A DNA stretch of 64,000 nt from assembly GCF_006345805.1 (NCBI RefSeq), contig NC_042999.1, forward strand, positions 58,156,001 through 58,220,000, read 5' to 3'. Each line of letters opens with the position of its first letter. Position 1 is the stretch's first letter. This DNA comes from Octopus sinensis. Taxonomy: Eukaryota. A model generated the notes under the pieces. That model searched no databases and had not been told where the DNA came from. It saw only the letters and a list, made by a program, of their open reading frames with translations. Position numbers and translations under genes: made by a program. Below are positions 14,100 through 60,400 of this stretch, piece by piece.

Positions 14100-14589
14100 A
14101 CTCACCACAAATATTGCAGCAAGACTGATTATAAAACAGAATTGTGATAACAAAGTGTCTCTGCCCCTTCTATAGGGGCTTCTCCCATCTGCATACCTTA
14201 TGTATGCAGAATTTTGAAAAGTAGATTTGTGAACAACCCACCTAGGAACACATCCATAGCAAGAAGATTGGAAGTATTGATGGAATTACAAATATCCCAA
14301 AAGTTGACAGAACCCCTTTGAAGTCTTCAGCAGAATTCCCTGAAATGCTAACATTTCAACCAGATCTCTGGTATAAGGAAAACTTGATATCCTGATGTGC
14401 TGCTTCCTCCTGCATTAACCCAAGAACTGTAGTTTCTTCCTCTTCTTTCCTTCTACCTGTAAGAAATGGGTGTTACCCTGTCTCTGATAAAACCAAAATT
14501 AAAAAAAAAAAGAAGCTATTTAGAAAAAGTGTTACTGCAAAGACTAGATAAAAATGTTGTATAAAAAAACCTTTTTTTTTCCTTAATAG

Positions 14590-14731
14590 GTTTATGACTG
14601 ATTTTGAGGCTTGGATGGAACAGTGTGACTTGTATATAGCTGAGAACGATTATGCTAAAGCTTCATTCTGTATGGAGGAATTGATATTATCTAATCCTCA
14701 CAATCATCTCTACCATCTGAAATATGCTGAG
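14590..14731 (+). CDS. EMC2: EMC2 coding exon (142 nt): [47 protein letters not shown]
   Basis: taatag/gtaagc boundaries; matches [47 protein letters not shown]. Confidence 0.97.
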
Positions 14732-14751
14732 GTAAGCACAAATTAATTTCT

Positions 14752-16067: not shown

Positions 16068-16279
16068 GAACGCCATGATGGACCGTTAGCTCCTACACGC
16101 ATTTTTTCTCTCCTTGTTTCTCTCCTTGTTTCTTTTCTGTGTATCTTTCTGTCGAAGAGCGTTGGCTCGAAACGTAAAAGACTTGTTCTATTTCTATTCC
16201 TGAGCGCCATACTAATACATTTGTGTGTTTGTACTCCACCTGCCTTCGTCTTTTGTTTATTTTCGTAAACCTTCCTGTT
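16068..16279 (+). mobile_element. Penelope-like terminal-repeat fragment inserted in (TA)n, carrying a hammerhead-like motif
   Basis: Flanked by TA runs on both sides; cttt-ctgtcga-a-gagc-gttg-gctc-gaaac-gta-aaag at 16145-16180. Confidence 0.55.
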
Positions 16280-16295
16280 ATATATATATATATAT

Positions 16296-17243
16296 CTCTA
16301 ATTCACATGTACTATCTCTCTCTCTCTCTCTCTCTCACATCTACAAGCTGTGAATTTCCGATTGCGAACAAGATAGGTGTTTTGAATTGCTATTTTCAAC
16401 TCTTTACTGACCATTCATAATTTTATCAAATTTCTCTATCTGTCTATCTTATCTAATCTTATTCATTTCATATCATTTCTCCTCGTATTAATCAACATTC
16501 GTATCTTCGCGCCATCTTGAAGCCTTTTCTCTCTAATTCACATGTACTATCTCTCTCTCTCTCTCTCTCTCCCCCCCCCCCTACAAGCTGTGAATTTCCG
16601 ATTGCGAACAAGATAGGTGTTTTGGATTGCTATTTTCAACTCTTTACTGACCATTCATAATTTTATCAAATTTCTCTATCTGTCTATCTTATCTAATCTT
16701 ATTCATTTCATATCATTTCTCCTCGTATTAATCAACATTCGTATCTTCGCGGTGCACCCGCCCTACCCACCCCCACCACCAATACTGGATATCTATATTT
16801 TTGCTCCATCTATACCGGATGTCGCTTCTCCCACCACCATTATAGGTGTCTACTCTTCGAAACCCCCCCCTCTTCAATACGCTATTTCACCATGCATTAC
16901 CCCTCTCTCGATATCCTACGTTCTACTTGCCTAGAACCTGTCATCATTTCTCTGAACCACCCCTCCCCACTGGTGCTTCCCTATATTTCTGCACCCCCCC
17001 CACATAAAAAGCACCATCCGAACGTGGCCGATGCCAGACCCCTCTGGCACCTGTGCAGGTGGCATGTAAAAAACACCCACTACACTCGCGGAGTGGTTGG
17101 CGTTAGGAAGGGCATCCAGCTGTAGAAACACTGCCAGACTAGACTGGAGCCTGGGGCAGTCCCGAGCTCCCCAGACCCCGGTCGAAACCGTCCAACCCGT
17201 GCTAGCACGGAAAACGGACGTTAAACGATGATGATGATGATGA
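16296..17243 (+). mobile_element. Composite retroposon copy 1: about two tandem ~240-bp monomers, C-rich body, RTE 3' tail
   Basis: Period 240 (gtatcttcgc at 16501 and 16741); body starts ggtgcacccgccc at 16751; ends aaacgatgatgatgatgatga. Confidence 0.85.
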
Positions 17244-17666
17244 TATATATATATATATATATATATAATGTCTGAGTATTTCTTTTACTGATGTATATTG
17301 GTGAAAGGTGAAAAAAAATGGCATAGTTTATAAAATAAAAAGTACTGTCTACTTGAATTTTACAGACACACCTTAGTCACTCTGTCCATTGTAAATACAA
17401 TAAATGACTCACTGGAAACCTATAAAAGCAGTGATATTATTGTTTACAAACTGTATAATTTATAAAAGAAAATATAAAAGTAAGATCTCAAAATAAAGGA
17501 AGATGACTGTTGTTGTCTTCCCATCATGAAAAGATTGTGAATCAGTATTTATACGTGTACCCACAATTAGTTTTTTTTTCCCCCCCCATTTTAAATTCTG
17601 TTATAATCATAATCTACACCACCCGAGAGGTATTTTTTACTCTTTCTTGTTTCAGCCAAGCGGCTA

Positions 17667-18028
17667 CATCATCATCATCGTTTAATGTCCGCTTTCCATG
17701 CTAGCATGGGTTGGATGATTTGACTGAGGGCCGGCGAACCAGATGGCTGCACCAGGCTCCAGTCTTGATCTGGCAGAGTTTCTACAGCTGGATGCCCTTC
17801 CTAACACCAACCACTCCGAGAGTGCAGTGAGTACTTTTATGTGCCACCAGCACGGGGGCCAGTCAGGCGGTACTGGCAACGACCTTGCTCGAATCTTTTT
17901 ACACATGCCAATGGCACAGGTGCCAGTAAGGCAATGCTGGTAATGATCTCGCTCGAATGGTGCCTTTTACATGCCACCAGTACGGAAGCCAGTTAGCCGC
18001 TCTGGCGATGATCACGCTCGGATGGTGT
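17667..18028 (-). mobile_element. RTE 3' UTR copy, antisense
   Basis: (CAT)n-cgtttaatgtccgctttccatgctagc... with subrepeats. Confidence 0.85.
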
Positions 18029-18227
18029 AGAAAGTTTCAGTAAAAAAATAATCGTTTTTTTGATAGTTACGAGGAAACAGTTGATTTTAGTGAATTATCC
18101 TAAACTCCTTTACTGCCCCTCCAAAACATTTTTCACAACAAATTCTAATATAACCAGAAACTACATTATCTGAAAAGTATATCTAGAAAATGTCATAACT
18201 GATTACAAATTTTGTTCTTATTTACAG

Positions 18228-18338
18228 ATTAAATATACACAAGGTGGTCCTGAAAACCTTGAAATAGCTAGAGCCTATTTCAGTGAAGCTGCAAAACTAA
18301 ATCCACACAATCTGCGCAGTTTATTTGGATTGTTAATG
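18228..18338 (+). CDS. EMC2: EMC2 coding exon (111 nt): IKYTQGGPENLEIARAYFSEAAKLNPHNLRSLFGLLM
   Basis: ttacag/gtaaat boundaries; matches [37 protein letters not shown]. Confidence 0.97.
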
Positions 18339-18351
18339 GTAAATAGATATA

Positions 18352-18577
18352 CTCTTTTACTCTCTCTCTTTTACTCTTTTACTTGTTTCAGTCATTTGAC
18401 TGTGGCTATGCTGGAGCACTGCCTTTAGTCGAGCAAATCAACCCCAGGACTTATTCTTTGTAAGCCTAGTACTTATTTTAGCGGTTTCTTTTGCCGAACT
18501 GCTAAGTTACGGGGACGTAAACATCAGCATCGGTTGTCAAGCGATGTTGGGGGGACAAACACAGCCACACAAACACA

Positions 18578-18615
<38 letters not shown>

Positions 18616-18772
18616 GATGGGCTTCTTTCAGTGTCCCGTCTACCAAATCCACTCACAAGGCTTTGGTCGGCCCGAGGCTATAGTAGAAGACACTTGCCCA
18701 AGGTGCCACGCAGTGGGACTGAACCCTGAACCATGTGGTTAGTTAGCAAGCTACTTACCACACAGCCACTCC
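18352..18772 (-). mobile_element. SINE family C (gtaggagtggctgtgtggtaag head, internal (TA)/(TG) tract, gagtaaaa tail)
   Basis: Reverse complement of the 48768-49155 family; starts 14 bp after an EMC2 donor. Confidence 0.88.
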
Positions 18773-19057
18773 TATATATTTTTTGTACTTTTGCATTTCA
18801 ATTAATTCAAAACTATCTGTATTAGGTGTATGTCTTTTAGATGTGAATCATGATAAAGTGGAGAACCTGCTTGTGATAAAATAAAGTACCAGCGAAATAC
18901 TGGGGTTGATGTGACAGGTTGTACTCTCCCTCAAGATTTGTGACGGTGTACTTAGGTTAGAAGCCATCATTATCATCATCTTCATCCCACCCCACTTCAT
19001 TATTATTTACATACCCATCGTCACTGTTTCTCCAGATATTACTAGAACATTTGTGTG

Positions 19058-19412
19058 AAGGCTCATGGCTAAGTGGTTAGAGCGTCAAGCTTACGATCGT
19101 CAGGTTGTGAGTTCGATTCCCAGACTGGGCTGCATGTTGTGTTCTTGAGCAAGACACTTTATTTCACATTGCTCCAGTTAGCTCAGCTATAGAAACGAGT
19201 TGCGACATCACTGGTGCCAAGCTGTATCGGCCCCTTTGTCTTTCCCTTGGATAACATTGATGGTGTGGACAGGGGAGGCCTGTATGCATGGTCGACTGCT
19301 GGTCTTCCATAGACAACCTTGCCTGGACTTGTGCCTGGGAGGGTAACTTTCTAGGTGTAATTCCATGGTCATTCGTGACCGAAGGGGATCTCCCACTGGG
19401 ACATTTGTAAAC
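19058..19412 (+). mobile_element. tRNA-derived SINE of another family
   Basis: tggctaagtggttagagc A box, gagttcgattcc B box, gtgttcttgagcaagacacttt central domain. Confidence 0.75.
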
Positions 19413-19446
19413 TTTGTGGATGTATGTTTCAGAAATTTGTTTCAAG

Positions 19447-20830
19447 GTCCATGAGCAGGCTAAGATTTCTCCCTTCTTTTTTCATACATACATACATTTG
19501 TCTACCGTTTAAATGTTTTGAACTTATAACCACCAATCTGCTTTGCTTTCCTTTTCTTTCTACATGCCACCCTAAAAACATCGCCATTCCCGCCCGTTTC
19601 TCTAAAAGTTCAACCTTCGCATGTTCCCTTTAATTCGATCTCCACCATTCACTATCATTTCTTCCCCTGGCTTACAGCGATGTCCATGAGCAGGCTAAGA
19701 TTTCTCCCTTCTTTTTTCATACATACATACATTTGTCTACCGTTTAAATGTTTTGAACTTATAACCACCAATCTGCTTTGCTTTCCTTTTCTTTCTACAT
19801 GCCACCCTAAAAACATCGCCATTCCCGCCCGTTTCTCTAAAAGTTCAACCTTCGCATGTTCCCTTTAATTCGATCTCCACCATTCACTATCATTTCTTCC
19901 CTGGCTTACAGCGATGTCCATGAGCAGGCTAAGATTTCTCCCTTCTTTTTTCATACATACATACATTTGTCTACCGTTTAAATGTTTTGAACTTATAACC
20001 ACCAATCTGCTTTGCTTTCCTTTTCTTTCTACATGCCACCCTAAAAACATCGCCATTCCCGCCCGTTTCTCTAAAAGTTCAACCTTCGCATGTTCCCTTT
20101 AATTCGATCTCCACCATTCACTATCATTTCTTCCCCTGGCTTACAGCGATGTCCATGAGCAGGCTAAGATTTCTCCCTTCTTTTTTCATACATACATACA
20201 TTTGTCTACCGTTTAAATGTTTTGAACTTATAACCACCAATCTGCTTTGCTTTCCTTTTCTTTCTACATGCCACCCTAAAACATCGCCATTCCCGCCCGT
20301 TTCTCTAAAGTTCAACCTTCGCATATTCCCGGTGCACCCGCCCTTGTCCACCCCCACCACCAATACCGGATATCTCTATATTTTTTGTTCCATCTATACC
20401 GGATGTCGCTTCTCCCACCACCATTATAGGTGTCTACTCTTCGAACCCCCCTCTTCAACACGCTATTTCACCATGCATTACCCCTCTCTTGATATCCTAC
20501 GTTCTACTTGCCTAGAACCTGTCATCATTTCTCTGAACCACCCCTCCCCACTGGTGCTCCCCTATATATTTCTGCACCCCCCCCCCACATAAAAAGCACC
20601 ATCCGAACGTGGCCGATGCCAGACCCCTCTGGCACCTGTGCAGGTGGCATGTAAAAAACACCCACTACACTCGCGGAGTGGTTGGCGTTAGGAAGGGCAT
20701 CCAGCTGTAGAAACACTGCCAGACTAGACTGGAGCCTGGGGCAGTCCCGAGCTCCCCAGACCCCGGTCGAAACCGTCCAACCCGTGCTAGCGCGGAAAAC
20801 GGACGTTAAACGATGATGATGATGATGATG
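19447..20830 (+). mobile_element. Composite retroposon copy 2: ~3.8 tandem 235-bp monomers, same C-rich body, RTE 3' tail
   Basis: gtccatgagcaggctaag at 19447, 19682, 19916 and 20151; body starts ggtgcacccgccc at 20331. Confidence 0.88.
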
Positions 20831-22025: not shown

Positions 22026-22404
22026 TATATATATTATTTTCACCATGTAAAGGTTGATAGTGACTTCAAAGTATCAGCTTATTAACTGTCATATATATAT
22101 GTTACATACCTGAAGCAGGCATGTCTGTGCAGTTAAGAAGTTTGCCTCTCAGTCACATGATTTCAGGTTCAGTCCCATTGCATAGCATCTTGGGCAAGTG
22201 TTTTCTGTACTGCAAAACAACCAAAGTGTTGTGTGTGAATTTGGTAGGAAGTAACTGAAAGAAAGCCCATCGAGTGTGTGTGTGTGTGTGTGGGGGGGTA
22301 TATGGGTATGTGTATATATGTGTGGATATAAGTGTGTGTGTATGTGTCTGTTTATATATATGATTATATGAAATTCATAATGTGCTGTGCAGTGTTTGTA
22401 TCAT

Positions 22405-23884
22405 CATCATCATCATCGTTTAACGTCCGCTTTCCATGCTAGCATGGGTTGGACGGTTCAACTGGGGTCTGCACCAGGCCAGTCAGATCTGGCAGTGTTT
22501 CTACAGCTGGATGCTCTTCCTAACGCCAACCACTCCGTGAGTGTAGTGGGTGCTTTTTACGTGCCACCAACACAGGTGTCAGACGAGGCTGGCAAATGGC
22601 CACGGTTGGATGGTGTTTTTTATGTGCCACCGGCACGGAGGCCAGGCGAGGCTGGCAATGGCCACGATCGGATGGTGTTTGTTACGTGCCACTGACACGG
22701 AGGCCAGTCGATGCGGCACAGGCTACGGCCACGTTCAGATGGTTCTCTTCCGTGTCACCGGCACTGGTATCACAACTACAAATTTCATTGATGTTGATCG
22801 ATTTCGATTTTGATTTTCACTTGCCTCAACAGGTCTTCACAAGTAGAGTTATGTGTCCCAAGAAGGAAGGTATGCACAGGTGGACTGACTACATCTCAGG
22901 TAGAGGCCACGGGTTATGGCCTCACTTGTCCTGCCGGGTCTTCTCACGCACAGCATACTTCCAAAGGTCTCGGTCTCTGGTCATTTCCTCGGTGAGACCT
23001 AAAGAGCGAAGGTCATGCTTCACCACCTCGTCCCAGGTTTTCCTGGGTCTATCTCTTCCACAGGTTCCCTCAACTGCTAGGGTGTGGCACTTTTTCACAC
23101 AACTATCTTCATCCATTCTCACCACGTGTCCATACCAGCGTAGACGTCTTTCTTGCACACCACATCTGATGCTTCTTAGGTCCAGCTTTATGCAAGCTTA
23201 CGCATATCCTCAGCAGTCACGGCCCATGTTTCACTGCCATGTAGCATGGCTGTTCGTACACATGCGTCATACAGTCTGCCTTTTACTCTGAGCAAGAGGC
23301 TTTTGTCACCAGCAGAGGTAAGAGCTCTCTGAACTTTGCCCAGGCTATTCTTACTCTAGCAGTTACACTTTCAGCACACCCGCCCCCGCTACTGACTTGA
23401 TCACCTAGGTAACGGAAACTATCAACTATTTCTAGTTTTTCTTTCTGGAACGTGGCAGAAGATGGTCTCTGCACATTTTCAGTGTTTATTGCTCCAGAGC
23501 ATCTGCCACATACAAAAACTATCTTCCTAGTTAGCCTTCCTTTGACATTGCTGCACCTCTTATGTGTCCATAGCTTACACTTGGTGCATCTTATAGAGTT
23601 CCTACCTACACCTTTTCTACAGATCGAGCAGGGCCATCTACCTGAAGGCGTTTGTGATTTGTCTACATTTCTACTTATTAGGACTTTGGTTTTAGCTAGG
23701 TTGATACTAAGGCCCTTCGTTTCTAATTCTTGCTTCCACGTCTGAAACCTCTCCTCATGTTCTGATAGTGACTCAGCAATTAGAGCAAGGTCATCAGCAT
23801 AGAGGAGCTCCCAGGGGCATCCTGTCTTGAATTCCTCTGTTATTGCTATGATACATAGGAGGGGGCTGAGGACTGAGCCGTGAA
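22405..23884 (-). mobile_element. 5'-truncated RTE-clade LINE (RT C-terminal half plus 3' UTR), frameshifted
   Basis: Minus-strand GSVLSPLL, WELLYADDLALIAE, GLSINLAKTKVL, LEIVDSFRYLG, RRLRWYGHVVRM, GRDRPRKTW; (GAT)n tail. Confidence 0.93.
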
Positions 23885-24049
23885 GACATATATGATATAA
23901 GGGTAATATGATATAAAGGTAATACTATGTATGTATAAATGGACATATATGACTACTTTCACGCCCTTCTGACCCCTCTTTTTACTGGGTCTTAATTTGG
24001 ATGCTGTATGGGAGGGAGCAAAAAATTATACTTCATTGAATCAAATTCA

Positions 24050-27000
24050 CAATGCACACTGAACTACCTAGCAAATGTATACTCAGATCTTTGCAAACAC
24101 TAAGAAAAGCCCCTCAGTGACTACTTCCTGTTGTTCCCTCAAGTATGCAATTTTAGGGCCGCAAACATCAATGGTGGCACAATGAAGGGGAGATCTGTTG
24201 AGATTGTTGAAATGATGGAGTGTCATCATATCGATGTGTGTGGTGTGCAAGAAGTGAGATGGAAAGGAGCTTCGTCTAGATTCCTCACAGGTAAGAAACA
24301 GGTTTAAATTCTTTTGGGTAGGCAGGAGTGATGGAGTGGGTGGTGTAGGCATACTCTTAGCAGAAAAATGGGTAGGTAAGGTAATTGAAGTAGTGAGAAT
24401 GTGTTAGGGTTATTAAGTTGAGAATTATCATAGATAGATTAATAATTACACATATCTCTGCCTATGTTCCACAGGCTGGATTGGCTGATGATTTGAATGA
24501 GGTCCTTTTACAGACTACCTCAACGGCAAATGACAGAGACTTCATTATTCTGGCTGGCAACTTTAATGGACATGTTGGGCAGCATTCCCATGGATTCCAT
24601 GGTGTGCATGGTGGTTGTGGCTTTGGCACCAGGAATGAAGAAGGTACAAGGATACTTGAATTTTGTGATGCAAATGATCTTATGATCTGTAACACTAACT
24701 TTAGAAAGCCAGCTAGCCACCTAATTATTTATTAGTCTGGTGGGAATATAAGCCAGGTTGATTACCTCCTCACCAGGCAAGGAGACAGACAAATGCAAAG
24801 TCTTTCCTAGGTGAAGAGTGTGTAATTTCAGAATTAAGGCTAGACATAAACCACGCTGGAAAAGGAGATTATGGAAGCTTGAAGACCCAGCAAACTAACA
24901 AAAATTTAGACATTCTACTGGAGGCCTCTGATGATAGAGGAGGAGGAAGAAGGGACATTTAGATTGGAGGACAACTGGAAGTTCCTGCGGAACAATTAAC
25001 TGGGTGCTGATGACCAAATCTGTGGTTGGTGCAAAGTCCCAGCCAGGCTAAGGGTGACTTGGTGGTAGAACAAGGAGATGGACAGTGCCATTAAATCAAA
25101 AAGATAGGTCTGAAAAGACTGGAAAAATGGTGGAAGCAAAGCATTATATCAGGGAGCTGGAAGGAAAGCTAGCTGACAGGTTTATATAACAAAAAGAATA
25201 GCAGAAGGTAAGAAGTTTGCCACTGTTATGCAGCACGAGGGTGAGAGGCATGAGGTGTTGAGGATTGCAAAGCAGTGTATCAGAGAGAATAGAGATGTGA
25301 TAGATGAGAGGTGTGTGTGTGAATGGATAATGGTATGGTTGCACTTAGTGACTCAGAGAAGAAAGATGTGTGGAGATGCCATTATGAAAGGTCATTAAAT
25401 GTGGAGAATGATTGGGAGAAGGAGTGTCTTTCAAGTATTGAATTAATTGAGGGACCAGCCATCAGAGTGGATAGCAGTATAATAAATATGGCAATTAAGA
25501 AAATGAAGACGAGGAAAACCCCTGGACCATTGGGTTTTCCTAGTCACTGCTGAGATGATTAAAATATCAGGTAGTGTGGAGGCAAAACCTGGAATCTTAA
25601 AGTTAACTTAGCTAAGATTAAAGTTGTTGTTAGTGAGAAAGGTGGTAAGACTCTCATTCCGGCTGGCAAATAGCCTGGCAAACAGCATGTAGGAAAGGAG
25701 TGGGATGTAATTCCATTCGCTGCACCAAGTGTAACCTATGGATGCATAAGAGATGCAGTGGAATCATGGGACGATTATCAGATAAGGTCGCTTTCGTGTG
25801 TGGCAGATGTGCAGGAACAGTGGACTTAAACTCTCTCAAATGCCCAGGAAGTTCTCGTAGATAGTTTCTGCTATTTAGGTGACCAAATTAGTAATGGTGG
25901 TGGATGCTCTGGAATAAGAAAAGGGTGGAGGAAGTTCAGAGAACTACTACCTTTGTTGGCAGCAAATGGACTCTCTCTCAGAGTGAAAGATAGGTTGTAT
26001 GATGCTTATGTGAGAACAGCTATGTTGTACAGTAGTGAGGCATGGGCTCTGACTGCGGAGGACTGGAGATGAATGAAGGTAATATGCTCCATTGGATTTG
26101 CAACATCAGTGTGCATGACCGACAAAGCACCACTGTGTTGAGAGAAAAGTTAAGCATAAGAGGGATTAAATGTGGTATGCAAGAGAGAAGACTCTTTTCA
26201 CCCACTCTTCCTTAAGAAATCAAACTACAATTCCTCTTCTAATTGCATCTTTCTCTTCCTCACATTCCCTCTTCATAAATTATGATTGTTTCCCAATCTC
26301 CTTTCCTGCCCTCACTGACATGCTCACTATATCACTGCTCCCCTCCATCCCACGACCACCCACACCCTATTTTTCTAACCAGGTTCTATGCTCATATTCT
26401 TGTTACTCGTGGGTATACCCTAGCACTACACCATCTCTCTTACACTTTTGCTGTTTCCTACTCTCTCTCTTTCCCTTTGGTCACTCTCTCCTTCTCTTGT
26501 TTTTCCTCTGACTAGGTAACCAAGTATCACCTTTACATCAGCACACTTGTTTCTGGCCTCTTTCTGTACCTCTCTCTCACTTTCTATTCCCCCCCTCTCT
26601 CTATATATAGCAAGATACCTATTTCTGCCTCTCTGTTTCTCTGTTACACTCTAACCTTTCATCATTTGATACTGGATCACCTCTGTTGTGGCAAGACACC
26701 TGCTTCTGTCTCTTTCCCTTTGTCACACTCTAACTTTTATCCTCTGACACAAATGCCCTACCCCTCTCATAATTCCTTGTCTTGTTAGTTACTTAGTTAC
26801 CCTGCCAGTGCTGGTGTCATGTTAAAAGCACCCAGTCCACACAAATGTGGTTGGCATCTGGAAGGGCATCAAACTGTAAAAATCCTGCCAAAACTAACTT
26901 CGCCTGTGCTAGTGCCATGTGAAAAGCACTGAGTCTACCCTGCAGAGTGGTTGGCGTTAGGAAAGGCATCCAGTTGTAAAAACCCTGCCAAAACAGACAC

Positions 27001-27098
27001 AGTAACCTTGGGTAGATTTTCTACCTGGTTGGTTCCTGTCAACTGTCCTACCCATGCATGCATGGAAGATGGATGTTAAATGATGCTGTCGATGATGA
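24050..27098 (+). mobile_element. Older, internally deleted RTE LINE: AP endonuclease, partial RT, long CT-rich 3' region and terminal tail
   Basis: GTMKGRSVEIVEMM..IDVCGVQEVRWKG, ILAGNFNGHVG, GFGTRNEEGTRILEFCDANDLMICNTNFRK, KTPGP, FCYLGDQIS, RKFRELLPLL; the YADD region appears deleted near 25560-25590; tail at 26790-27098. Confidence 0.85.
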
Positions 27099-27261: not shown

Positions 27262-27520
27262 AATCATCATCATTATCGTTTAATGTCCGTTTTCCATGAT
27301 GGCATGGGTTGGACAGTTTGACTGGGGTCTGGGAAGCCAGGAGGCTGCACCATGCTCCAATCTGATCTGGCAGTGTTTCTACAGCTGGATGCCCTTCCTA
27401 ACGCCAACCACTCTGAGAGAGTAGTGGGTGCTTTTTACATGCCACCTGCACAGGGGCCAGGGTAGTGGCGGCTGGCAATAGCCATGATCGGTTGGTGCTT
27501 TTTGCGTGCTACTGGCACAG
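27262..27520 (-). mobile_element. RTE 3' UTR copy, antisense
   Basis: catcattatcgtttaatgtccgttttccatg...gatgcccttcctaacgccaacc. Confidence 0.85.
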
Positions 27521-27897
27521 AAAACACAATCTTTCAGGATGATAATGCACCAATTCACACAACTAAAGTTGTTACTGATTGGCATGAGGAACATTCTAGT
27601 GAAGTTGAACATCTTATCGGGCCATCACACTTCCCAGATCTCAATATTATTGAATATCTATGGTGCATTTTAGAAAAACAGTTAAGGAGTTGATATCTTC
27701 CACCGTTATCACTACAAGAACTGGAGACTGTTTTTTGCTGAAGAATGGATAAAAATTCCTTTGGAAACAATTCAAACTTTGTACAAGCCCATACCTTGTA
27801 GAATTCAAGCTGTAATTACTGCCAATGGCAGTCCTACCCTTATTAAAATGAATTTGTTTGAAATTTTAAGATGTTTCCATTATTTTGTCAAACCCCT
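27521..27897 (+). mobile_element. Tc1-family transposase C-terminal fragment with a probable right TIR
   Basis: IFQDDNAPIHTTKVVTDWHEEHSSEVEHLIGPSHFPDLNIIEYLW; ends gtttccattattttgtcaaacccc. Confidence 0.85.
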
Positions 27898-28091
27898 TTT
27901 TGTATATGTGTATATATATGTGGTGTGTGTGTGTGGTGTGTGTGTGTGTATACATACACACATGGCATGTTTCAGTCTTTCTACTACCCATCCTGTGTTG
28001 TTATCGAGGTAAATTGTATTTTCACCTAGTATGGATGGTAATTTAGTATTGAAGTAACTTAATTTGTTTTCCATCATTTATCTTTTTACAG

Positions 28092-28196
28092 ACTGCAAGT
28101 GGTTTAGCTGTTTATCATTCAAAGAATTCCAAAGAAAGACAAGCTAACACAAAATATGCTATGTGGGCTGCCGAGCAGATCAATGAAATCTATGGA
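28092..28196 (+). CDS. EMC2: EMC2 coding exon (105 nt): TASGLAVYHSKNSKERQANTKYAMWAAEQINEIYG
   Basis: ttacag/gtaagt boundaries; matches [35 protein letters not shown]. Confidence 0.94.
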
Positions 28197-32559: not shown

Positions 32560-32659
32560 NNNNNNNNNNNNNNNNNNNNNNNNNNNNNNNNNNNNNNNNN
32601 NNNNNNNNNNNNNNNNNNNNNNNNNNNNNNNNNNNNNNNNNNNNNNNNNNNNNNNNNNN
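32560..32659. other. Assembly gap (exactly 100 N)
   Basis: Seen directly; a round 100 N usually marks a join of unknown size, so left-right adjacency is uncertain. Confidence 0.99.
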
Positions 32660-33215: not shown

Positions 33216-35861
33216 AATAGATCTCAAAACCAAACATGAGGGGTGCAGAGTTCGGGCTAAAGTGCGCGCATTGGGCCGTGAGGGAATTAATTCTGCCGGA
33301 TGGGCCCTTACGGTAGAAACCCAGCGTGGCAATGGTACCACAATTAATTCTCTCGTGGATGACAATGGGAGTTCGGTCGATGACGGAACGAGATGTGTGA
33401 GGTAATTCACAAGCACTTTGCCGAGTTTTTTGGGAATGGCGGGGCGCTGGATCATGGCGAGGTCCTTAGGGACTTCCTGTCTGGCGGCCCGCGTCTCTCG
33501 GCTGAGTGCTGTGAAGGGCTAATCACGGCCGAGGAGGTAATCGAGGTACTGGGCGAATGCCCCGGGGAGAAGTCGCCGGGTCTCGATGGTCTGCCTTATG
33601 AATTTTACAAAACTATGCCAGACTTGTTCGGGCACCTGCTGGCCGGCGTCTACGCTAATTGGCAGCAGCATGGGAGAATTCCCAAGTCTGCGAGCCGGGT
33701 GGGGGTGACGTTGATTAGGAAGGACCCGAGCAAGGGGGATGAGATAGGGAACTTCAGGCCCATAACTCTGTTGAACACAGAGTTAAAGATTTTGGCCAAG
33801 GTGCTAGCAAAAAGGTTGGCGCGGGTCGTGGACAAACTTGTCGGGGAAGCGCAAACGTGCGCTATCCCGGGCAGGACAATCCACGACAATCTCCACCTTA
33901 TACGCTACTCCTTAGAGAGGGTGGGGAAGCTTTCTTGCGCGGGGGGAGGGTCACTGATGTATTTAGACCCGTCTAAGGCATTTGATAGGGTCGACCATCG
34001 GTACTTGGCGGCGATCCTCGAGAAGGCTGGCCTGAGTCCGACCTTCCGCGGTTGGATTGCTTCGTTGTACAGCCACATCGAGTCCATCGTAAAAGTGAAC
34101 GGTTTCCTTTCGAAGCCATTCAGGATCGAGCGCTCAGTGAGTCAGAGGTGTCCCCTGTCCCCGCTTTTGTATGTACTGGCTCTCGAGCCATTATTGCGGA
34201 AGTTGGAGGCACTAGAGGGCGCATCGCATGATCTATGGTGTTGAAGAGGAGCTACGGCGTATGCGGATGACATCTCCATCATCGTGGCGGATGAGGGCCA
34301 GCTTCCAGTGGTGGAAGAGGCTATCAAAAGTTACGAGGCGGTGGCAGGAGCAAAGGTTAACAAGGACAAGTCAATTGGTTTGCAGCTCGGCCCCTGGAGG
34401 AGCAAGCCGATGCCGTCCAATAACGTCGTGGGGCGTTGGACGGAAGGTCCTGTTAAGCTGCTCGGAGTCTGGTTCGCGCCAGACTTCCAGAGAAAAATTG
34501 GAGTGAGGTGGCCAGCAAGGTGACTGCTCTAACCCAGACGTGGTCTGGGTGGGCGTTATCCTTGCTAGGAAAGGCGGAGGTGGTGCAGATGTTCATAGCA
34601 TCGGTTATCACCTACCGTCTGACCGTGGTGCCTTGCCCCGATTTGTGGCTGAATAAGTTGGAGAGAATCCTTTTCCACTTTTTGTGGAAGGGAGGAAGGC
34701 CACTCATGAAGCGCTCTGTCTGTTGCCAGAAACCGCTAAAGGGTGAGCTAGGGATGCCTTGGCTGAGGATGCGAAAATTCGCTTCAAGGTTAAGGCATCT
34801 CTGGCTTTACCTGGATGGAGAGCAGGTGTGGTCGCCGCACGTTCGGTTCTATCTTCCGCAATTAACGTCCTTAACGGACATTGGTAATTAGATCAAGCAG
34901 AGACCCAGGCTGGGGACTGGCAATTGGAGTACCGCCAGGCACTTCAGCTACTTTCTCGAGCGGGCAATGCCGGCAACAAGAGTTCCACCGCGGATTTCTA
35001 TAGTGGGTTAGTGGAGGTTAAGTCCGAAGACGCCTTGGGGGAGACCCTGGGCTACGATGAAAACCAGTTAATCAACCAGTTCAGGAGAACTTTCGGGCCG
35101 GGGTATCTGGACAATTACTAGAAATCTCTGGCTTGGCAGTGCTTCCGTGCGGCGTTACCTGTACGTGATAAACTGTCAAGGCACGGAAGTGCCGTCTCGC
35201 CGACATGTCCGAGGTGCGGGCAGGACAGGGAAACCGTCTTGCACGCATTTGTGGATTGTCCGGAAGTAACGGGACTGATAGTTTTCGCAGAGCAACTATT
35301 GTCATCGATGGGAAGAGTACAGTTATAGGTTGAATCTGTCATCGAGATTGTGCCTCCTCATGCCCTTAACAGGGAAAGGAAGGTTTGCTTTTTCTGCGTA
35401 GTAGCTATACTGAAAGAAACAGTATGGAAGACGCATATAAGAGGCATAGTGTCGGGTACCTTTGTATCCGGCCAGGTTGGTTAACTTTTTTAGTTACCAC
35501 CTCAGTAATAAGATCAGGCTGGAGAAAAGGTACCTGTCACGAGACAGATTAATGAGATGATGGAAGCCTGTGGCGAGGAAGCTGGGAGTGTTTGGCACCA
35601 GGTAAGTGGAAGCCAAAAACAGGAAAGAAAAAGCAAGGGGTCTACCCTGGTAGTCGGATGTCTATCCTTCAGAGAAGCCATTACAAATTTCATTTGTAAT
35701 GAGCAACGCTTAAGTCAAAAGTTATAAACATATTTATTAAATTATTGTAAATTTTAAATTGTAAATATTTAATCGCTACAGCTACTTCACCCTTTTATGT
35801 TTGTCTGTTCTTGTTTGTCCTCTCTTTGTAATGCCTTCATGGCAAATATTTATGAAATAAA
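33216..35861 (+). mobile_element. L1/Tx1-clade LINE ORF2 (RT plus C-terminal CCHC), endonuclease missing, few stops and frameshifts
   Basis: KSPGLDGLPYEFY, NFRPITLLNTELKILAKVLAKRL, SKAFDRVDH, QRCPLSPLLY, AYADDI, CPRCGQDRETVLHAFVDCP; AATAAA at 35856-35861. 32660-32850 (IEKCLAPIWKDIKYIARG) may be its ORF1. Confidence 0.93.
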
Positions 35862-39477: not shown

Positions 39478-39905
39478 GGGATGGGAAAGGCGGCGAGCTG
39501 GCAGAAACGTTAGCACGCCGGGCGAAATGCTTAGCGGTATTTCGTCTGCGTTACGTTGTGAGTTCAAATTCCGCCGAGGTCGACTTTGCCTTTCATCTTT
39601 TCGGGGGTCGATAAATTAAGTACCAGTTACGCACTGGGGTCGATGTAATCGACTTAATACCTATGTCTGTCCTTGTTTGTCCCCTCTATGTTTAGCCTCT
39701 TGTGGGTAATAAAGAAATAGGTATTTCGTCTGCCGTTACGTTCTGAGTTCAAATTCCGCCGAGGTCCACTTTGCCTTTCATCCTTTCGGGGTCGATAAAT
39801 TAAGTACCAGTTACGCATTGGGGTCGATGTAATCGACTTAATCCGTTTGTTTGTCCTTGTTTGTCCCCTCTGTGTTTAGCCCCTTGTGGGTAGTAAAGAA
39901 ATATA
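39478..39905 (+). mobile_element. Dimeric family-B SINE
   Basis: Full monomer, then a head-less second monomer from ggtatttcgtctg (~39720); candidate TSD tctcttca at 39470-39477 and 39906-39913. Confidence 0.85.
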
Positions 39906-49199: not shown

Positions 49200-50380
49200 T
49201 CGTTTTATTTTTTCCCCCACTTATGTGATTTTGCCCATTTTTGTACTATCCCACTATGTTTAGCCCCCCCCCCCCGTGGGCAATAAAGACATCGTTGTTG
49301 CAATCATCTGAAATGGAACTGCCAAAGAGTGATATTCGAGCAATTTTGCTATTCAACTTCAAAATAGGACGTAAAGCAGCTGAAACTTCTCGCGATATCA
49401 ACGAAACGTTTGGTCAGGAAATGACCAGTGAGTGACCAATTCGAAAATGGTTTAAAGGATTTCACAGTGTAATCCTGAGCCTTGAAGATCGTGAGCATAG
49501 TGGATGCCCATCTGTTATCGATGACGGTCAATTAAAGACCGTCATTGAAAAAGATCCACGTGAAACCACTCAAGAACTGGCAAAAGAACTTCAAGTTAGC
49601 CAGAGAAATGCCTGCAACCGTTCCATGCGATCGGAAAATCAAGAAAGCTCGACAAATAGGTATCACACGATTTGAATGAAAGTCAGAAAATGCACAGATA
49701 TGAAATTTGCTCGTCGCTCCTTTTCCGTAACCAGACCGATCCATTTCTCGACCGTAACTTGAGATGATTCTGTACAATAATAATAATGTTCTTCGCAGTG
49801 GTTGGACCAAAATGAAGCACCGAAAACCTTCCTCAAACCCGAGTTCTTCAAAAATAACGTTATGGTGACTGTTTGGTGGTGTACTGCTGGAGTCATCCAC
49901 TATAACTTCTTAAAACACCGAAAAATCATTACTGCAGAAATATATTGCCATGAAATTTCCAAAATGAACGAAAAACTGCTACTCGTCCATCCCAGACTGG
50001 TCAACAGAAGAGGACCAATCATTCTTTATGAAAATGCTCGACCACACATCTCACTAATGACACTCCAGAAGTTGAAACTTTCCCACCCAGCTTATTCCCC
50101 AGACCTTTCTTCTACCGACTACCGCTTTTCAAGCACTTTGATGGTTTCCTGCGAGAGAAGGAGATAAAAAATCAAGCCGATGCTGAAAGTGCGTTCAAAG
50201 AGTTCCTCAACTCCAGAACTCCAGGATTTTATTTTACAGGAATAAACAAACTTGTAATTCGTTGGTAAAAATGTGTTGATTGTCTGGTACTTACTTTGAT
50301 GAGTAAAATTTCCGCATTGTTGAAATATATTGTGATGAATTTTATGTTTCAAAATGTGGATTACTTTTACTCAGCCTGAC
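49200..50380 (+). pseudogene. Near full-length dead mariner transposase (Hsmar1/cecropia-like)
   Basis: ATG at 49313: MELPKSDIRAILLFNFKIGRKAAETSRDINETFG; VMVTVWW..AGVIHY; HPAYSPDLSSTDY; stops and frameshifts; TIR-like aaaatgtggattacttttactcagcct at the 3' end. Confidence 0.9.
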
Positions 50381-50468: not shown

Positions 50469-50882
50469 AAGGTTGTGAGCTGGCAGAAACGCTAAGACGC
50501 CGGGCGAAATGCTTAGCAGTATTTCGTTTGCCGTTATGTTCTGAGTTCAAATTCCGTCGAGGTCGACTTTGCCTTTCATCCTTTCGGGGTCGATTAAAAA
50601 AGTATCAGTTACGCAATGGGGTCGATATAATCGACTTAATCCGTTTGTCTGTCCTTGTTTGTCCCCTATGTTTAGCCCCTTGTGGGTAGTAAAGAAATAG
50701 GTATTTCGTCTGCCGTTATGTTCTGAGTTCAAATTCCGCCGGGGTCGACTTTGCCTTTCATCCTTTTGGGGTCGATAAATTAAGTACCAGTTACGCACTG
50801 GGGTCGATGTAATCGACTTAACCCCTTTGTCTGTCCTTGTTTGTCTCCTCTATATTTAGCCCCTTGTGGGCAATAAATAAAT
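50469..50882 (+). mobile_element. Dimeric family-B SINE nested in an antisense family-C SINE
   Basis: TSD aagacat at 50462-50468 and 50883-50889; internal junction aaagaaata|ggtatttcgtctg. An inverted monomer follows at 50969-51200. Confidence 0.88.
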
Positions 50883-52236
50883 AAGACATCTACCCAAAGT
50901 GCCACGCAGTGAGTTCGAACCCAGAATCATGTGACTGGAGAGCAAGCTTCTTACCACGAAGAAAAAATATATTTCTTTACTACCCACAAGGGGCTAAACA
51001 CAGAGGGGACAAACAAGGACAGACAAACGGATTAAGTCGATTACATCGACCCCAGTGCGTAACGGGTACTTAATTTATCGACCCCGAAAGGATGAAAGGC
51101 AAAGTCGACCTCGGCGGAATTTGAACCCAGAACGTAACGGCAGACGAAATACGGCTACGCATTTCGCCCGGCGTGCTAACGTTTCTGCCAGCTCGCCGCC
51201 TTTTTACCTTAACATACCATTTAACACAAAAGATTATGAATATATATAGTCATAATTAAGCACAATTGTACATATTTCTTATTTCTGTCAATCCCCGTAT
51301 TTATAGATATCTGCCAGTAAGTATTTAAGTTTAAAGATGTATGTTGTTGACTGTTGGTAGTTCTTATAAAACCTATTTTCTCTAAAACACACACACACAC
51401 ACACACATTTGGAAATGTGGGTGTATGTTTGTGTTCGTTAGTTTGTTTATGTGTGTGTGCGTGAACGAGCGTGTGTTCAGCTTGTCCTCACTTGACGTTT
51501 CGTTTAACGTCATTTCTTTTCAATGTCGATGTTAATATGACACCAAGATAAAAAATATCTCAACTGTACGTCTGTCAAACTATCTTTATTTTTGTTTGCT
51601 AATATATTTTCCTTCTCTTTCTTTTGTAACTTGTGGTGTTTTCGCTTCCGTAAAATATAAATAAATAATGATGGATAACGTTACTAGTCACACAATAAAA
51701 AAAAAAAAACACAAACGTCGTCTATGCTACAATCTTTGCATATCTACTTCGTATTTCATAGTGATACAACCCTTTTAAGGTACGATAGTACGTAAAAAAA
51801 TATAAAATAGTGGAGTTCCTCGAATTTCATGGTGAAGAAATATCCCTTCGGCTGGAGGTACAAAGTCTGAAATTTGTGGGGAAGGGACTAGCTGATGACA
51901 TCGACTCCAATGTTTCACTGGTACTTAATTTATTGACCCCAAAAGGATGAAAAGCAAAGTCGACCTCGGCGGAATTTGAACTCAGAACGTAGCGGCAGAC
52001 GAAATGCCGTTAAATATTTCGCCCAGCGTGCTAACGATTCTACCAGCTCAGCGCCTCATGGTGAAGAAATATCAAACAACACCTCATGGATTTGGTACAG
52101 CAACGTACCGAAGAAGTTGGTCCAAATGAAGATGCAAAATTAAAACCACCTCGGATTTTGACAACTAAGGATCTTTCTGAGCCTTTCCAGTTTCATAGCT
52201 CGTAAAGCTTTAATCATTTTCAGTGAAAAAGATCCT

Positions 52237-57099: not shown

Positions 57100-57410
57100 T
57101 AAATGTTTTCTATAATTTTATATGTGTACGTCTGTGTGTTCTATCCATCATTTTCATTCTTCCCTCCCTACCTCACCCTTCTCCTTCTCTACCTCATACC
57201 ACTCCTCATTTTGCTGTGTCACTCCCCATGCAAACCACTTACACATCACTCCTCTACTTTATTCTTTTCGTCATTATCAATTTTGAACCTAAGCACTTTT
57301 ATATTTTGTCTCTCTTTCTCGCTTATCTCCGATGAAGGTAAAATGCCCGAAACGTCAAACGTCTGTTCTTCACGACACAAATATTCTGTTAAGCGCTTAC
57401 AGGGTTAAAA
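57100..57410 (+). mobile_element. Penelope-like terminal-repeat relic with a degenerate hammerhead motif
   Basis: tct-ccgatga-aggtaaaatgccc-gaaac-gtc at 57326-57356. Confidence 0.5.
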
Positions 57411-60400
57411 TTATGCCAAACGTGAAGTTACATGTATCATCATCATCAATATCATCATCATCCTCATTGTTAATACTTGTAGTGATAGAGGAGGTGGTAT
57501 GGTGGTGGTAGTTGTAGATGTAGTATTTGTCGTTTTTGTTGTTGTTACTATTCTTTAGCCACAGGCCAGCTTGCTCATGGTCAGAGTAGTTCTTGCAACC
57601 ATCCAGCAATTTACATAATATATGTAAGTTTGATTATCTAATTCGACCGTTCTTTTCCCTTTTTTTGACGAAGATAGTGTAATTCGAAGGAAATATGGCT
57701 ACTATTTATAGCCAATCGAAAGACTATATAACGGCGCCGTCGATAATTTTCCTTCGAACTTAGTTCTGTCTGAAACCCTACTGCCTGTATTCAAATATAT
57801 TTCATATGTACTCGATAGTTTGAACTACCTAAATGAATTTTTATTAAAATATGAACGCACAATTGAGCAATGTACTCATACATCGAGTCCTGTTAGTATT
57901 CTGTTATTTCTTTCGGATTTTTTTACTTGTAATGACTATAATTAATATAATGTAATGTCCAGAAATGTTGTCAACAAACTCAATTGTTTTAGTTTTGTTA
58001 TTGTTTACTCGTGTTAAAAACAACAACCCAATTCTAATATGCATTTAAGAAACAAAACAGATAAACTGAAAACGGTAGAAAGCTATTGCCATCTCATGAG
58101 GCAGAGAACAACATTATCAATAAATAAAGAAAACTAATACATCAGAGAAAAGAACTGGTCTCTGAGATACAAATGATTGTTAAGAAATTGAAAGAAATTG
58201 TTGATGAGAATGAAGACACATAATGTTTAACTAGTGAAAATACAGCAGAATTGGGGGAAGCAGCTGTGCTGAAAGATAATAAAAATTAATTTTAGTTTCT
58301 ATTCCTGTAGATTTCTTATCGTACCTCAACAAACATATAAAAAAAAATCTTTGTGAAAATCTGAAAGCAGCTTTTCCAAAGACGGTGATTTGCGAAAGGA
58401 AAATTGTCGTTCTGGAAAATCTCAGTGGCGTCGTAAATTCGAGGAATACATAATTTGTTAAGCCAATAAATAACCTGTACGAATATTTGCAGGTGCTAGC
58501 ACGTTCTGCACAGATAACTGCATGGACCAAGGTGTGAAGATCCCAATCTGTCAGTATTTTTTAGGAAAAATCGCGTTACAATTTGTGTCTACGAAACCAA
58601 TAATACAAGGAAATATTGATTCTCCATGAAATTAATTTTAATTCAACAGACACAATCGCAGACACAAAGTAATGAAACGCTGGTAACTAATCAAATAGAA
58701 GCTTTTTTTTGCAAGAAACTTTAACAAACCATGACATTAATAATGGGCGTGTCTCAGTGTCTGGTCAAAAGTCCAGAATTATTTGCATAAATTTTGATCT
58801 TCGGAATATGAGAAGACCAATGTATGCATGAATCTACCAATAAAACTAATCGATCCGAAATAATCGAAAACAGTCCTGTTATTTCCACTACAATTGAGAG
58901 GTTCTCGTTATTAACTTAGGTTCTTTTTGTACAAGTAACATATTTAATTTTAACATAGGTACAAAGCCTCAAAGTTTAGAACGAGAGATATAGTTAGTTA
59001 AATCACTTTCGTACTGTTATTTTAGTTTATCCATAAAAATAATAGGTATAGTTCGCTTTGATAGGATCTGAATTTTGAAAGTATAGTGACCAGATTAAAT
59101 ATTGCGGGGTATTTTTGTGTTCGACGCACCATAAATCTCATTCTGTGCTATACAAGAAACACACTGCAATCAGCCGGATGGATATCACAGAGATTAGAAA
59201 CATCGATAAAATGTAAATCTTCCTTTTTCATTTCTTGCCAGCTTGTTTGGGGTGCTATGCAAATAGCTAGCTCCGAGAAACAGAAGCTATTGTAGTAGTG
59301 GTAGAAAGAGTTAGAGAAGCCAGAGTCTATAGAACTGAGAGATGAAGTGTACTGGTAACTCCTTGTTAGTCGGTCAAGGACAATCACGGGAAACTTGCGG
59401 TCCGCAGGACTTTCTGAATGACATGCCTTACGAGAAAATTACCTTGAATTTTCTTAGTAATGCGGCCCGCCTAATGACAAGCAATGTCTTATGCGGCCGG
59501 CTTCTTAAAAAAAAAGGTTGACCATACTTTGTCTAGGATGTTTGTTGCAGCAGCACTGTTCTTTGTTTGAAAGTAGCGATTCATTGTGGTTCTCATTTGA
59601 GGTTTGTAAAGAAACAGTTGTTCGGGGTGAATTATTTTTTGGCTCCGAAGAGTTAGGCTATGCCGTGAATGCTATGGATTTAAGATCACCAATGAGATTA
59701 TCAGTAATTGTGAGGCTTTATATGTCCCATAAGGGTGCAGGCGATGGTAATTTGTTAAAATCTGGATTGGAAGATGAAAAATACATCAAAGATGTGAAGG
59801 TTGTACTTGTGAAGATTAGTGTGAGCGAGTATACAAATTGCTGTTGAGAATTAAAGATTTAATAAAATAAGAAAAACAGAAACTGAATCGGCTTCTATAC
59901 GAGCAGCATTAGTGTAGGATGAGTGAGAGATAAAAAAAAAAAGAGCTATAGTCACTGGAAATGATTTCAGAGAGAAGTGAAATAAGATATACATCCTTAA
60001 TGCAGAACGGGAGATATTGAATCAGTTGAGAGGTTGCTGGAAGAGTTAGGAAAGGAGTGGAGGAAATTGGCAGGCTTAGAGTTATGAGGAAAGAAGCCTT
60101 TAATGTGAATCTCGAGCTTAAACTGATTATTTTTATCACTATCGAAAGAGGAATGAAATTATTTCACCTTTGCTTGTGGTTAAGGAAAAATGGGAAAAAG
60201 ATAGAAACAGAGGGATGAAGTAATAAAAAGAGTTATGCCAGATTTTCTTTATATATATATTATATCAAAAGAAAATCTGGCAAAATATTCGAAAAATAGT
60301 AAAAAAAATAGCCAGAGAAGTAACTATCAAAAATGTCAGCAATTACAACTATCATTTTATTTTATCTGCTACATCAATAAGCGTAAACAATACAAATAAT

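Follow-up and report, generated by a model that had tools for sequence, protein, structure and literature searches.

What kind of element carries one and the same ~500-bp module behind two unrelated tandem arrays within a single gene? The question is raised by 64,000 nucleotides of the Octopus sinensis genome (assembly GCF_006345805.1, contig NC_042999.1, positions 58,156,001 to 58,220,000; this whole stretch is hereafter called the window and is numbered from its first base), in which two inserts on the forward strand, copy 1 (16296–17244) and copy 2 (19447–20830), lie within the gene EMC2. We consider it probable, at roughly 60%, that both inserts belong to a composite retroposon without coding sequence, which has a 5′ block of a variable number of tandem repeats (VNTR) and is mobilised in trans by an octopus RTE-like long interspersed nuclear element (LINE).

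Both copies are built from the same succession of parts. Copy 1 opens with an array of monomer 1 (M1; 16296–16750, + strand), which Tandem Repeats Finder (TRF) reports at 16295–16751 as 240 bp × 1.9 with 95% matches and which is organised as (19–24-bp linker + 216-bp A)n with a 5′-truncated first unit; its 5′ edge is marked by a (TA)8.5 microsatellite (16279–16295; TRF). The array is followed by a C-rich, non-coding body (16751–17001, +), by an RTE-derived 3′ module that comprises the end of one 63–65-bp untranslated-region (UTR) repeat and a structured tail (17002–17226, +), and by a terminal (GAT)6 microsatellite (17227–17244, +; TRF). Copy 2 opens with an array of monomer 2 (M2; 19447–20330, +; TRF, 235 bp × 3.8 with 99% matches), organised as (53-bp + 182-bp)n in which the first unit is 5′-truncated by 53 bp, whereas the last is full-length and has diverged slightly further (98.4%). 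It continues with the body, located by alignment (20331–20586, +), the RTE-derived 3′ module (20587–20811, +) and a terminal (GAT)6.3 microsatellite, which is also the insertion boundary (20812–20830, +; TRF).

The initial annotation, made from the sequence alone, had described a ~500-bp module shared at ~95% identity and preceded by unrelated, pyrimidine-biased arrays of ~240 bp × ~2 and 235 bp × 3.8, with a YY1-type motif at the M1 unit junction, largely intact CpGs and no tRNA head, and quantification upholds this description. Between 16732–17244 and 20312–20829 the common module is 95.6% identical over 521 columns, and its substitutions thin out from 5′ to 3′, with 5 in the 20 positions of the junction, 4 in the 70 of the body start, 3 in the 175 of the remaining body and 1 in the 228 of the tail. 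The two tails are 99.6% identical, and the bodies (20331–20576 in copy 2) 93%, compared with 97.5% between the body of copy 1 and that of its O. vulgaris orthologue. M1, M2 and the body show no significant mutual similarity in Smith–Waterman comparisons against dinucleotide shuffles (z −0.8 to 2.8). On the + strand the arrays and the body are strongly pyrimidine-rich (GC skew −0.43 to −0.68), and the CpG observed/expected ratio is 0.96–1.04 in the arrays versus 0.61 in the window. What has to be corrected is the start of the module, which had been put exactly at 16751 and 20331: similarity begins ~20 bp 5′ of ‘ggtgcaccc’, where 16731–16750 and 20311–20330 agree at 15–16 of 20 positions. These final 20 bp of the M1 unit (16731–16750, +) are semi-conserved with the end of the M2 unit and with an O. 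bimaculoides sequence (L014, discussed below).

The phase in which the arrays are read matters for their interpretation. With a complete last unit, (linker + core)n abuts the body and only the 5′-most unit is shortened, by 19–24 bp in copy 1 and by 53 bp in copy 2, so the truncated last monomer of the initial annotation is a matter of phase. Both arrays stop within ±1 nt of one homologous position. The YY1-type motif, CGCCATCTTG, was found by motif match in the linker between the M1 units (16509–16518, +), and CGCCATCTT occurs once in the window, at this site; M2 holds the CGCCAT core only, ~100 bp from the unit start. A clustering of CGCCAT at the elements was considered and set aside as weak, given that 7 of the 15 occurrences in the window lie in or beside elements but only 2–4 of these are independent.

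Neither copy has a recognisable small-RNA head or coding capacity. No tRNA or other small-RNA head was detected in either copy with ARAGORN or with Rfam (gathering threshold and E ≤ 1), and Rfam at E ≤ 1 found no self-cleaving ribozyme family in the units. The predicted RNA folds of the G-poor monomers are no better than those of shuffled sequences (z = −0.27 for M1 and +0.68 for M2), and on this and the Rfam result a retrozyme or ribozyme identity was rejected. No reverse transcriptase or endonuclease coding capacity is present: the longest open reading frames (ORFs) span 105–147 aa and have no homologues among 5.8 billion proteins, exact look-ups of the 147-aa, 105-aa and 103-aa ORFs returned no match, nor did a homology search with the 147-aa ORF, and a HMMER search of the ORF spanning tail and body against 1.84 billion representatives gave matches confined to the tail. 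The copies contain no ORF between array and tail, so the array does not sit on an autonomous LINE 5′ of its ORFs.

Recent mobility is documented by comparison of orthologous EMC2 loci, which were retrieved with the EMC2 protein from O. bimaculoides (L001), O. sinensis (L002, identical to the window) and O. vulgaris (L003); the window itself matches O. sinensis CM016861.1 at 100%. The O. vulgaris locus has an empty site for copy 2, TTTCAAG|GTAGCATT (L003 31076/31077), and the filled site in O. sinensis reads TTTCAAG-GTCCATGAG...(GAT)6-GTAGCATT, with GTCCATG...GATGAT at the edges of the insert. Since the entire 1384 bp of copy 2 (array, body and tail) are absent from the O. vulgaris site, they arrived in one insertion after the species split; the element was therefore mobile after O. 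sinensis and O. vulgaris separated. In O. bimaculoides the site is not alignable and cannot serve as an outgroup for copy 2. Copy 1 is common to O. sinensis and O. vulgaris. It is bracketed by (TA)8.5 at 16279–16295 and (AT)12.5 at 17243–17267, an arrangement found alike in O. vulgaris, and any target-site duplication (TSD) of copy 1 is masked by these TA-repeats on both sides. For copy 2 the duplication amounts to at most 2 bp (GT). The lack of a TSD noted in the initial annotation is thus borne out, but its reading as a weakness of the boundaries is not: an RTE-tail element at 17669–18026 (−), made up of three 63–65-bp repeats, the tail and (GAT)n, occurs in both O. sinensis and O. vulgaris but not at the O. 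bimaculoides site (L001 32841–32845), and it too has no TSD, with 3 bp possibly lost. A missing TSD is therefore normal for this tail family.

The array of copy 1 has changed in place since the two species diverged. The O. vulgaris orthologue carries ~4 units (3.9) of 268–278 bp versus 1.9 in O. sinensis, and a 39-bp internal duplication is found in every O. vulgaris M1 unit and in neither of the O. sinensis units; otherwise the M1 units are 97–100% identical between the species. The CGCCATCTTG-type motif is retained at two of the three O. vulgaris unit junctions and part-deleted in the third. A species-fixed 39-bp indel combined with a change of unit number at a single locus means that the arrays are remodelled and homogenised in place, as VNTRs are. 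Since the M1 array is also present in the independent O. vulgaris assembly, the arrays are not an artefact, which answers for M1 the concern over mis-assembly raised at the outset. Nor is it coincidence that two arrays meet the same module boundary, because tandem arrays with a period of ≥100 bp occur only about once per 20–25 kb in the sampled octopus DNA (~230 kb). Tandem duplication around RTE tails is common. At L013 3682–4596 (O. vulgaris, OX597840.1), six 137-bp units are arranged head to tail, each consisting of the terminal ~115 bp of an RTE tail and its own (GAT)n.

The tail identifies the putative partner. A query with an RTE-like ORF remnant of the window returned octopus ‘craniofacial development protein 2-like’ (CFDP2) and reverse transcriptase domain-containing protein entries (Pfam Exo_endo_phos, RVT_1 and PHD), and we take a CFDP2-type annotation to be typical of RTE-derived endonuclease domains. 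The 3′ end of the LINE, which carries APE and RT ORFs, can be read at L004 9000–11826, where the ORF end (...RRLRWYGHVVRM...LWKYAV) is followed by ~200 bp of unique UTR, three 63–65-bp repeats, the tail and (GAT)n. Window positions 17005–17241 and 20590–20826 are 84.9% (copy 1) and 84.5% (copy 2) identical to L004 11591–11826, and the copies are colinear with the LINE only from ~17002/20587 onwards, over the end of one repeat and the tail. Body and monomers show no resemblance to the LINE 3′ UTR, its 63–65-bp repeat or its ORF on either strand; derivations of the monomers or the body from a diverged 63–65-bp UTR repeat, from the unique 3′ UTR or from each other were tried and rejected as not significant. 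About 12 further tail copies occur in the window at 72–89%, and (GAT)n terminates the LINE and all tail copies. The 3′ end is the part recognised by such reverse transcriptases. The copy 1 tail is predicted to fold at −79 kcal/mol (z = −2.0), and two predicted hairpin domains of the tail are conserved in 14 copies, with a few compensatory changes, including one that falls within the element studied here. Beyond octopus, a tail 26-mer matched seven non-octopus JGI contigs in metagenomes (L006–L012), with which the tail shares only a 34-bp core, matched exactly, GGTTGGCGTTAGGAAGGGCATCCAGCTGTA(A/G)AA, and this suggests that the core is a deeply conserved retroposon domain; a body 20-mer had no match in the metagenome scan, and a full-text literature search returned none of the element sequences.

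A further two LINE copies in the window served as comparators. A 5′-truncated canonical RTE-like LINE at 22401–23882 (−) retains the ORF C-terminus, the ~200-bp UTR, the 63–65-bp repeats and the tail, with 85–88% identity to L004 10289–11826. In both canonical LINE 3′ ends, L004 and window 23882–22401, neither body nor monomers stand between ORF and tail. The second comparator, defined by alignment at 24100–27098 (+), is a degenerate RTE-like LINE continued by ~600 bp of unrelated sequence rich in pyrimidines and then by a tail with 72% similarity; O. vulgaris has an orthologue of it. Within this copy the ORF breaks off at ...QERRL (~26185), ~65 codons short of the normal end by comparison with P0130 and L004, so we regard it as a dead chimera and not as a UTR variant. 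It follows that LINE chimeras form at this locus and that pyrimidine-rich non-LINE segments before RTE tails recur here. Taken together, the tail data speak for a putative hijacking of the LINE recognition end and against a position of body and arrays inside the LINE 3′ UTR.

A possible source was found for the start of the body only. Positions 16746–16789 match L014 5790–5831 from O. bimaculoides (the TTCGCGGTRCACCC patch) at 36 of 44 positions (z = 6.4; 0 of 300 shuffles), and the body start of copy 2 matches the same segment with z = 5.0. The L014 sequence, TTCGCGGTACACCCACCCTTACACCCCTCCACCTGTACTGGA, lies 170–210 bp upstream of the ATG of an APE ORF in a LINE that is assigned to the L004 family by 87–89% identity over the overlap. 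The resemblance begins about where copies 1 and 2 begin to resemble each other, the junction stretch matching L014 at 13 of 22 columns by hand count on the alignment, and fades after ~60 bp. From this alignment we see about even odds that a fragment of LINE 5′ UTR forms the start of the body, in which case the shared module would be an internally deleted bipartite RTE. An origin of the body as the antisense of the LINE ORF, prompted by a C-rich regular-expression match in L004, was rejected (z ≤ 0.8). Among the other LINE copies, the RTE APE ORF of L015 (GCA_024449705.1), 71% identical in nucleotides to the O. bimaculoides LINE, is preceded directly (1–850) by tandem repeats with a 33-bp period and a higher-order periodicity, which extend over 850 bp or more.

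How would a composite retroposon of this kind arise and move? The LINE-derived 3′ ~225 bp together with (GAT)n would be recognised by the RTE reverse transcriptase. The body would stem at least partly from the LINE 5′ UTR and the tail from the 3′ UTR, and copies 1 and 2 may represent two subfamilies that carry different pyrimidine-rich segments before the same module boundary. These 5′ segments could have been gained by template switching, 5′ read-through or recombination, and each would then be prone to tandem duplication, which would produce the VNTR behaviour. Transcription is probably by RNA polymerase II (Pol II) or by read-through from the host gene, because inspection of the arrays by eye, without a scan, shows several runs of four T and no A or B boxes. 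The initial annotation had suggested a non-autonomous, RTE-mobilised element, and this part of it is supported by the presence of copy 2 in one species and its absence from the other, the ~85% match to the LINE tail and the fact that nothing recognisable is encoded.

Several observations weigh against this reading. The body occurs at two loci, plus one orthologue, in ~230 kb of fetched octopus DNA, so that ‘family’ and ‘subfamily’ rest on n = 2. For copy 1 the 5′ boundary has no empty-site confirmation, an O. bimaculoides assembly gap of ~650 N (L001 31416–32069) falling exactly at the orthologous site. The link to the LINE 5′ UTR is one 44-bp patch at one O. bimaculoides locus, where it may belong to the flank of the LINE, and in three LINE copies of more distant relationship (L005, window 23850–24170 and L015) nothing upstream of the APE ORF matched it significantly. 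For the remaining ~190 bp of the body and for both monomers, the sequence comparisons made returned no source. Finally, simple independent tandem duplication does not explain why the arrays share their end (±1 nt); candidates are a functional promoter/tether boundary, a template-jumping RNA 5′ end or a recombination-prone 20-bp motif.

The alternative that survives best, although we judge it unlikely, takes the 235–240-bp units for Pol II promoter monomers as in mouse L1, with a fixed start in each unit and subfamilies that would swap monomer types; the tandem layout would keep a promoter upstream of the internal start after each round of copying. Units of L1-monomer size do stand at the extreme 5′ end, the last of them abutting a non-repeated, ‘tether-like’ body, and 12–20 bp upstream of the start position of copy 1 there is a complete YY1-type motif, which reads CAAGATGGCG on the minus strand. 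The undepleted CpG of the arrays, an array/body boundary that is the same in both subfamilies and thereby suggests a functional one, the tandem repeats directly 5′ of the ORF in the RTE copy L015, and the mouse precedent (PMC9022269, PMC11602158) are all consistent with promoter function. However, M1 and M2 have no motif architecture in common, M2 offering the CGCCAT core alone, and the motif is part-lost at one O. vulgaris junction. The 5′ ends lie at different unit offsets (19–24 versus 53 bp) and, with one copy per type, do not demonstrate a fixed start site; turnover in place, together with other arrays near tails, shows that arrays can form here with no promoter function required. The exchangeable tandem 5′ promoters proposed in the initial annotation are not supported, the full motif being confined to M1 and the arrays behaving as VNTRs, whatever further role they may have. 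In its broadest form, with octopus RTE elements and their non-autonomous derivative both using interchangeable ~240-bp monomers as 5′ promoters in convergence with rodent L1, the idea seems to us unlikely; the array/body boundary would then be a functional junction, or else the 5′ terminus of an RNA from which arrays are rebuilt through template jumps of the reverse transcriptase.

It is similarly improbable that the inserts are one-off chimeras, in which the true element would be a ~520-bp core and the unrelated 5′ pieces would have joined by read-through or template switching, becoming tandem then or later. In its favour, the similarity between the copies and the similarity to the sequence upstream of the LINE start at about one point, as expected for the 5′ end of a core RNA, and the units are complete with only the 5′-most one truncated, as would follow from repeated end-to-end template jumps. 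A chimera of LINE and non-LINE sequence exists in the same window (24100–27098), and 5′ exchange is known for SVA (PMC6139936). Yet flanks picked up at random would contain tandem arrays in only ~2% of cases and would not be expected to share the same-strand pyrimidine bias of the body. We know of no class of 235–240-nt RNA with these sequences, and Rfam returned none. The two unit types also resemble each other over their final 20 bp (15–16/20), so the breakpoint does not fall exactly at the core end.

We regard it as very unlikely that the inserts are 5′-truncated autonomous RTE subfamilies with arrays and body inside a long 3′ UTR. Most LINE copies are 5′-truncated, a truncation within the array would look alike, and in the LINE at 24100–27098 the ORF remnant is separated from the tail by a pyrimidine-rich segment; the last point loses force with the ORF of that copy cut ~65 codons early in a dead chimera. 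More directly, the two canonical LINE 3′ ends, which have the closest tails, contain neither body nor monomers, colinearity with the LINE (ORF end, UTR, tail) stops at ~17002/20587, and the body start resembles sequence upstream and not downstream of the LINE ORF. The capture of inserts by an RTE 3′ UTR, offered in the initial annotation as an alternative, is disfavoured on these grounds. A local duplication of copy 1 into copy 2 or a mis-assembled array can practically be dismissed, for although the copies lie on the same strand 3.5 kb apart and only a single assembly shows the M2 array, their 5′ parts are unrelated, copy 2 ends exactly at (GAT)n opposite a clean empty site in O. vulgaris, the bodies of the two copies (93%) diverge more than those of the copy 1 orthologues (97.5%), and an independent assembly confirms the array of M1.

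The surroundings of the copies are those of a repeat-rich gene. A tblastn search with EMC2 located exons on the + strand at ~5038, ~10834, ~13022, 14558–14737, 18210–18338 and 28077–28193, and the protein encoded by the exons in the window is the EMC2 sequence of O. sinensis and O. vulgaris. Both copies are intronic and in sense orientation, copy 1 between the exons at 14558–14737 and 18210–18338 and copy 2 between the latter and that at 28077–28193. Just 5′ of copy 1, the segment 16069–16278 is pyrimidine-rich, begins after a (TA)n run and contains two CGCCAT motifs; the idea that it may form part of the element, or be kin of 57100–57420 (57300–57370, with a …cgaaacgt… motif), gained no support, the alignment being non-significant (61 of 300 shuffles). 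Two elements adjoining the copies, at 18340–18770 (−) and 19060–19400 (+), look by eye like tRNA-derived short interspersed nuclear elements (SINEs), their heads uncalled by ARAGORN and Rfam; the former contains an (AC)n run, and the latter has relatives at 73–87% in L003, L005 and L001. Further along, a remnant of a second, different LINE reverse transcriptase lies at 33393–34891 (+), and mariner/Tc1-like transposase remnants lie at 27520–27600 and 49802–50167, one of them interrupted by an RTE-tail element (27263–27503). A 182–184-bp × 2 tandem structure recurs four times (window 39536–39903 and 50519–50883; L013 5814–6187 and 12888–13223) and is probably a dimeric repeat family. The window has an assembly gap of 100 N at 32560–32659.

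The locus provides a dated, clean case in which an RTE has recently driven mobilisation, with the insert found in O. sinensis and not in O. vulgaris, and it directly demonstrates the remodelling of a tandem array in place. It also supplies an anatomy for one ‘unclassified’ non-autonomous type, namely a LINE tail, a probable piece of LINE 5′ UTR and a 5′ VNTR. If true, the reading as interchangeable promoters would mean that monomer promoters had for the first time been met with beyond L1, and in a non-autonomous element at that. Should the M1 and M2 subfamilies prove heritable, with transcription starts inside the monomers, convergent monomeric promoters would become testable; otherwise this would be one more composite retroposon. 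Young LINEs and unclassified SINE-like elements are exceptionally abundant in octopus genomes, and a connection has been drawn between RTE activity and the octopus brain (PMC9115989, PMC13282606). For O. vulgaris, 893 ‘unclassified SINE’ and 13 RTE families with recent activity have been reported (PMC13282606); given the former number, some library may already contain a consensus of the element without a name.

Bipartite non-autonomous RTEs are well documented, among them the RTE-N families, RTESINE, WALLSI3 and elements of Bov-A type (PMC5786205). Like RTE-N elements (PMC5786205), the octopus element has no ORF, takes its 3′ end from a partner RTE LINE, ends in a microsatellite and appears to be mobilised in trans; the 5′ part matches sequence just upstream of an RTE ORF, and 5′ regions would be swapped between related families. 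In its workings the element thus resembles a bipartite RTE-N element to which a VNTR has been added. It differs in being much longer (0.95–1.4 kb), in that ~45–60 bp of its 5′ part are tied to the LINE, at one locus, and in carrying 235–280-bp tandem arrays before the LINE-like module. To our knowledge, such arrays ahead of a LINE-like module have not been described for RTE-N elements.

SVA and LAVA elements (PMC7353768, PMC3287187, PMC6139936) offer a second parallel, being likewise non-coding composites of unrelated modules with a pyrimidine-rich 5′ part, dependence on a LINE, a tandem block whose unit number varies at orthologous loci, and subfamilies that differ by exchanged ends. Unlike these, which depend on L1 with poly(A), the octopus element would use an RTE-like LINE through a structured tail and (GAT)n; its units measure 235–280 bp versus 35–50 bp, its array stands at the extreme 5′ end, and it has no long TSD. 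There is no sequence relationship between them, and the likeness is by analogy only.

With the A, Gf and Tf monomers and tether of mouse and rat L1 (PMC9022269, PMC11602158) the octopus element has in common ~200-bp-class tandem 5′ units, the last joined to a non-repeated segment, unrelated monomer types on otherwise related elements, and a YY1-type motif in one monomer type. Here, however, the carrier is non-autonomous and RTE-dependent, the motif is not found in both types and the arrays change in place, so the likeness is one of layout only. Cephalopod tRNA-derived SINEs with RTE tails, which by eye are abundant in the same introns, share the dependence on an RTE-like LINE tail. From canonical SINEs the element is set apart by the absence of a tRNA, 5S or 7SL head and of A and B boxes, by being 3–5 times longer, and by runs of four T that would stop Pol III. 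Unlike metazoan retrozymes (PMC7229834), it has no hammerhead or other self-cleaving ribozyme in its units. In conclusion, the octopus element looks like a variant of the known parasite-of-a-parasite kind and not like a new class.

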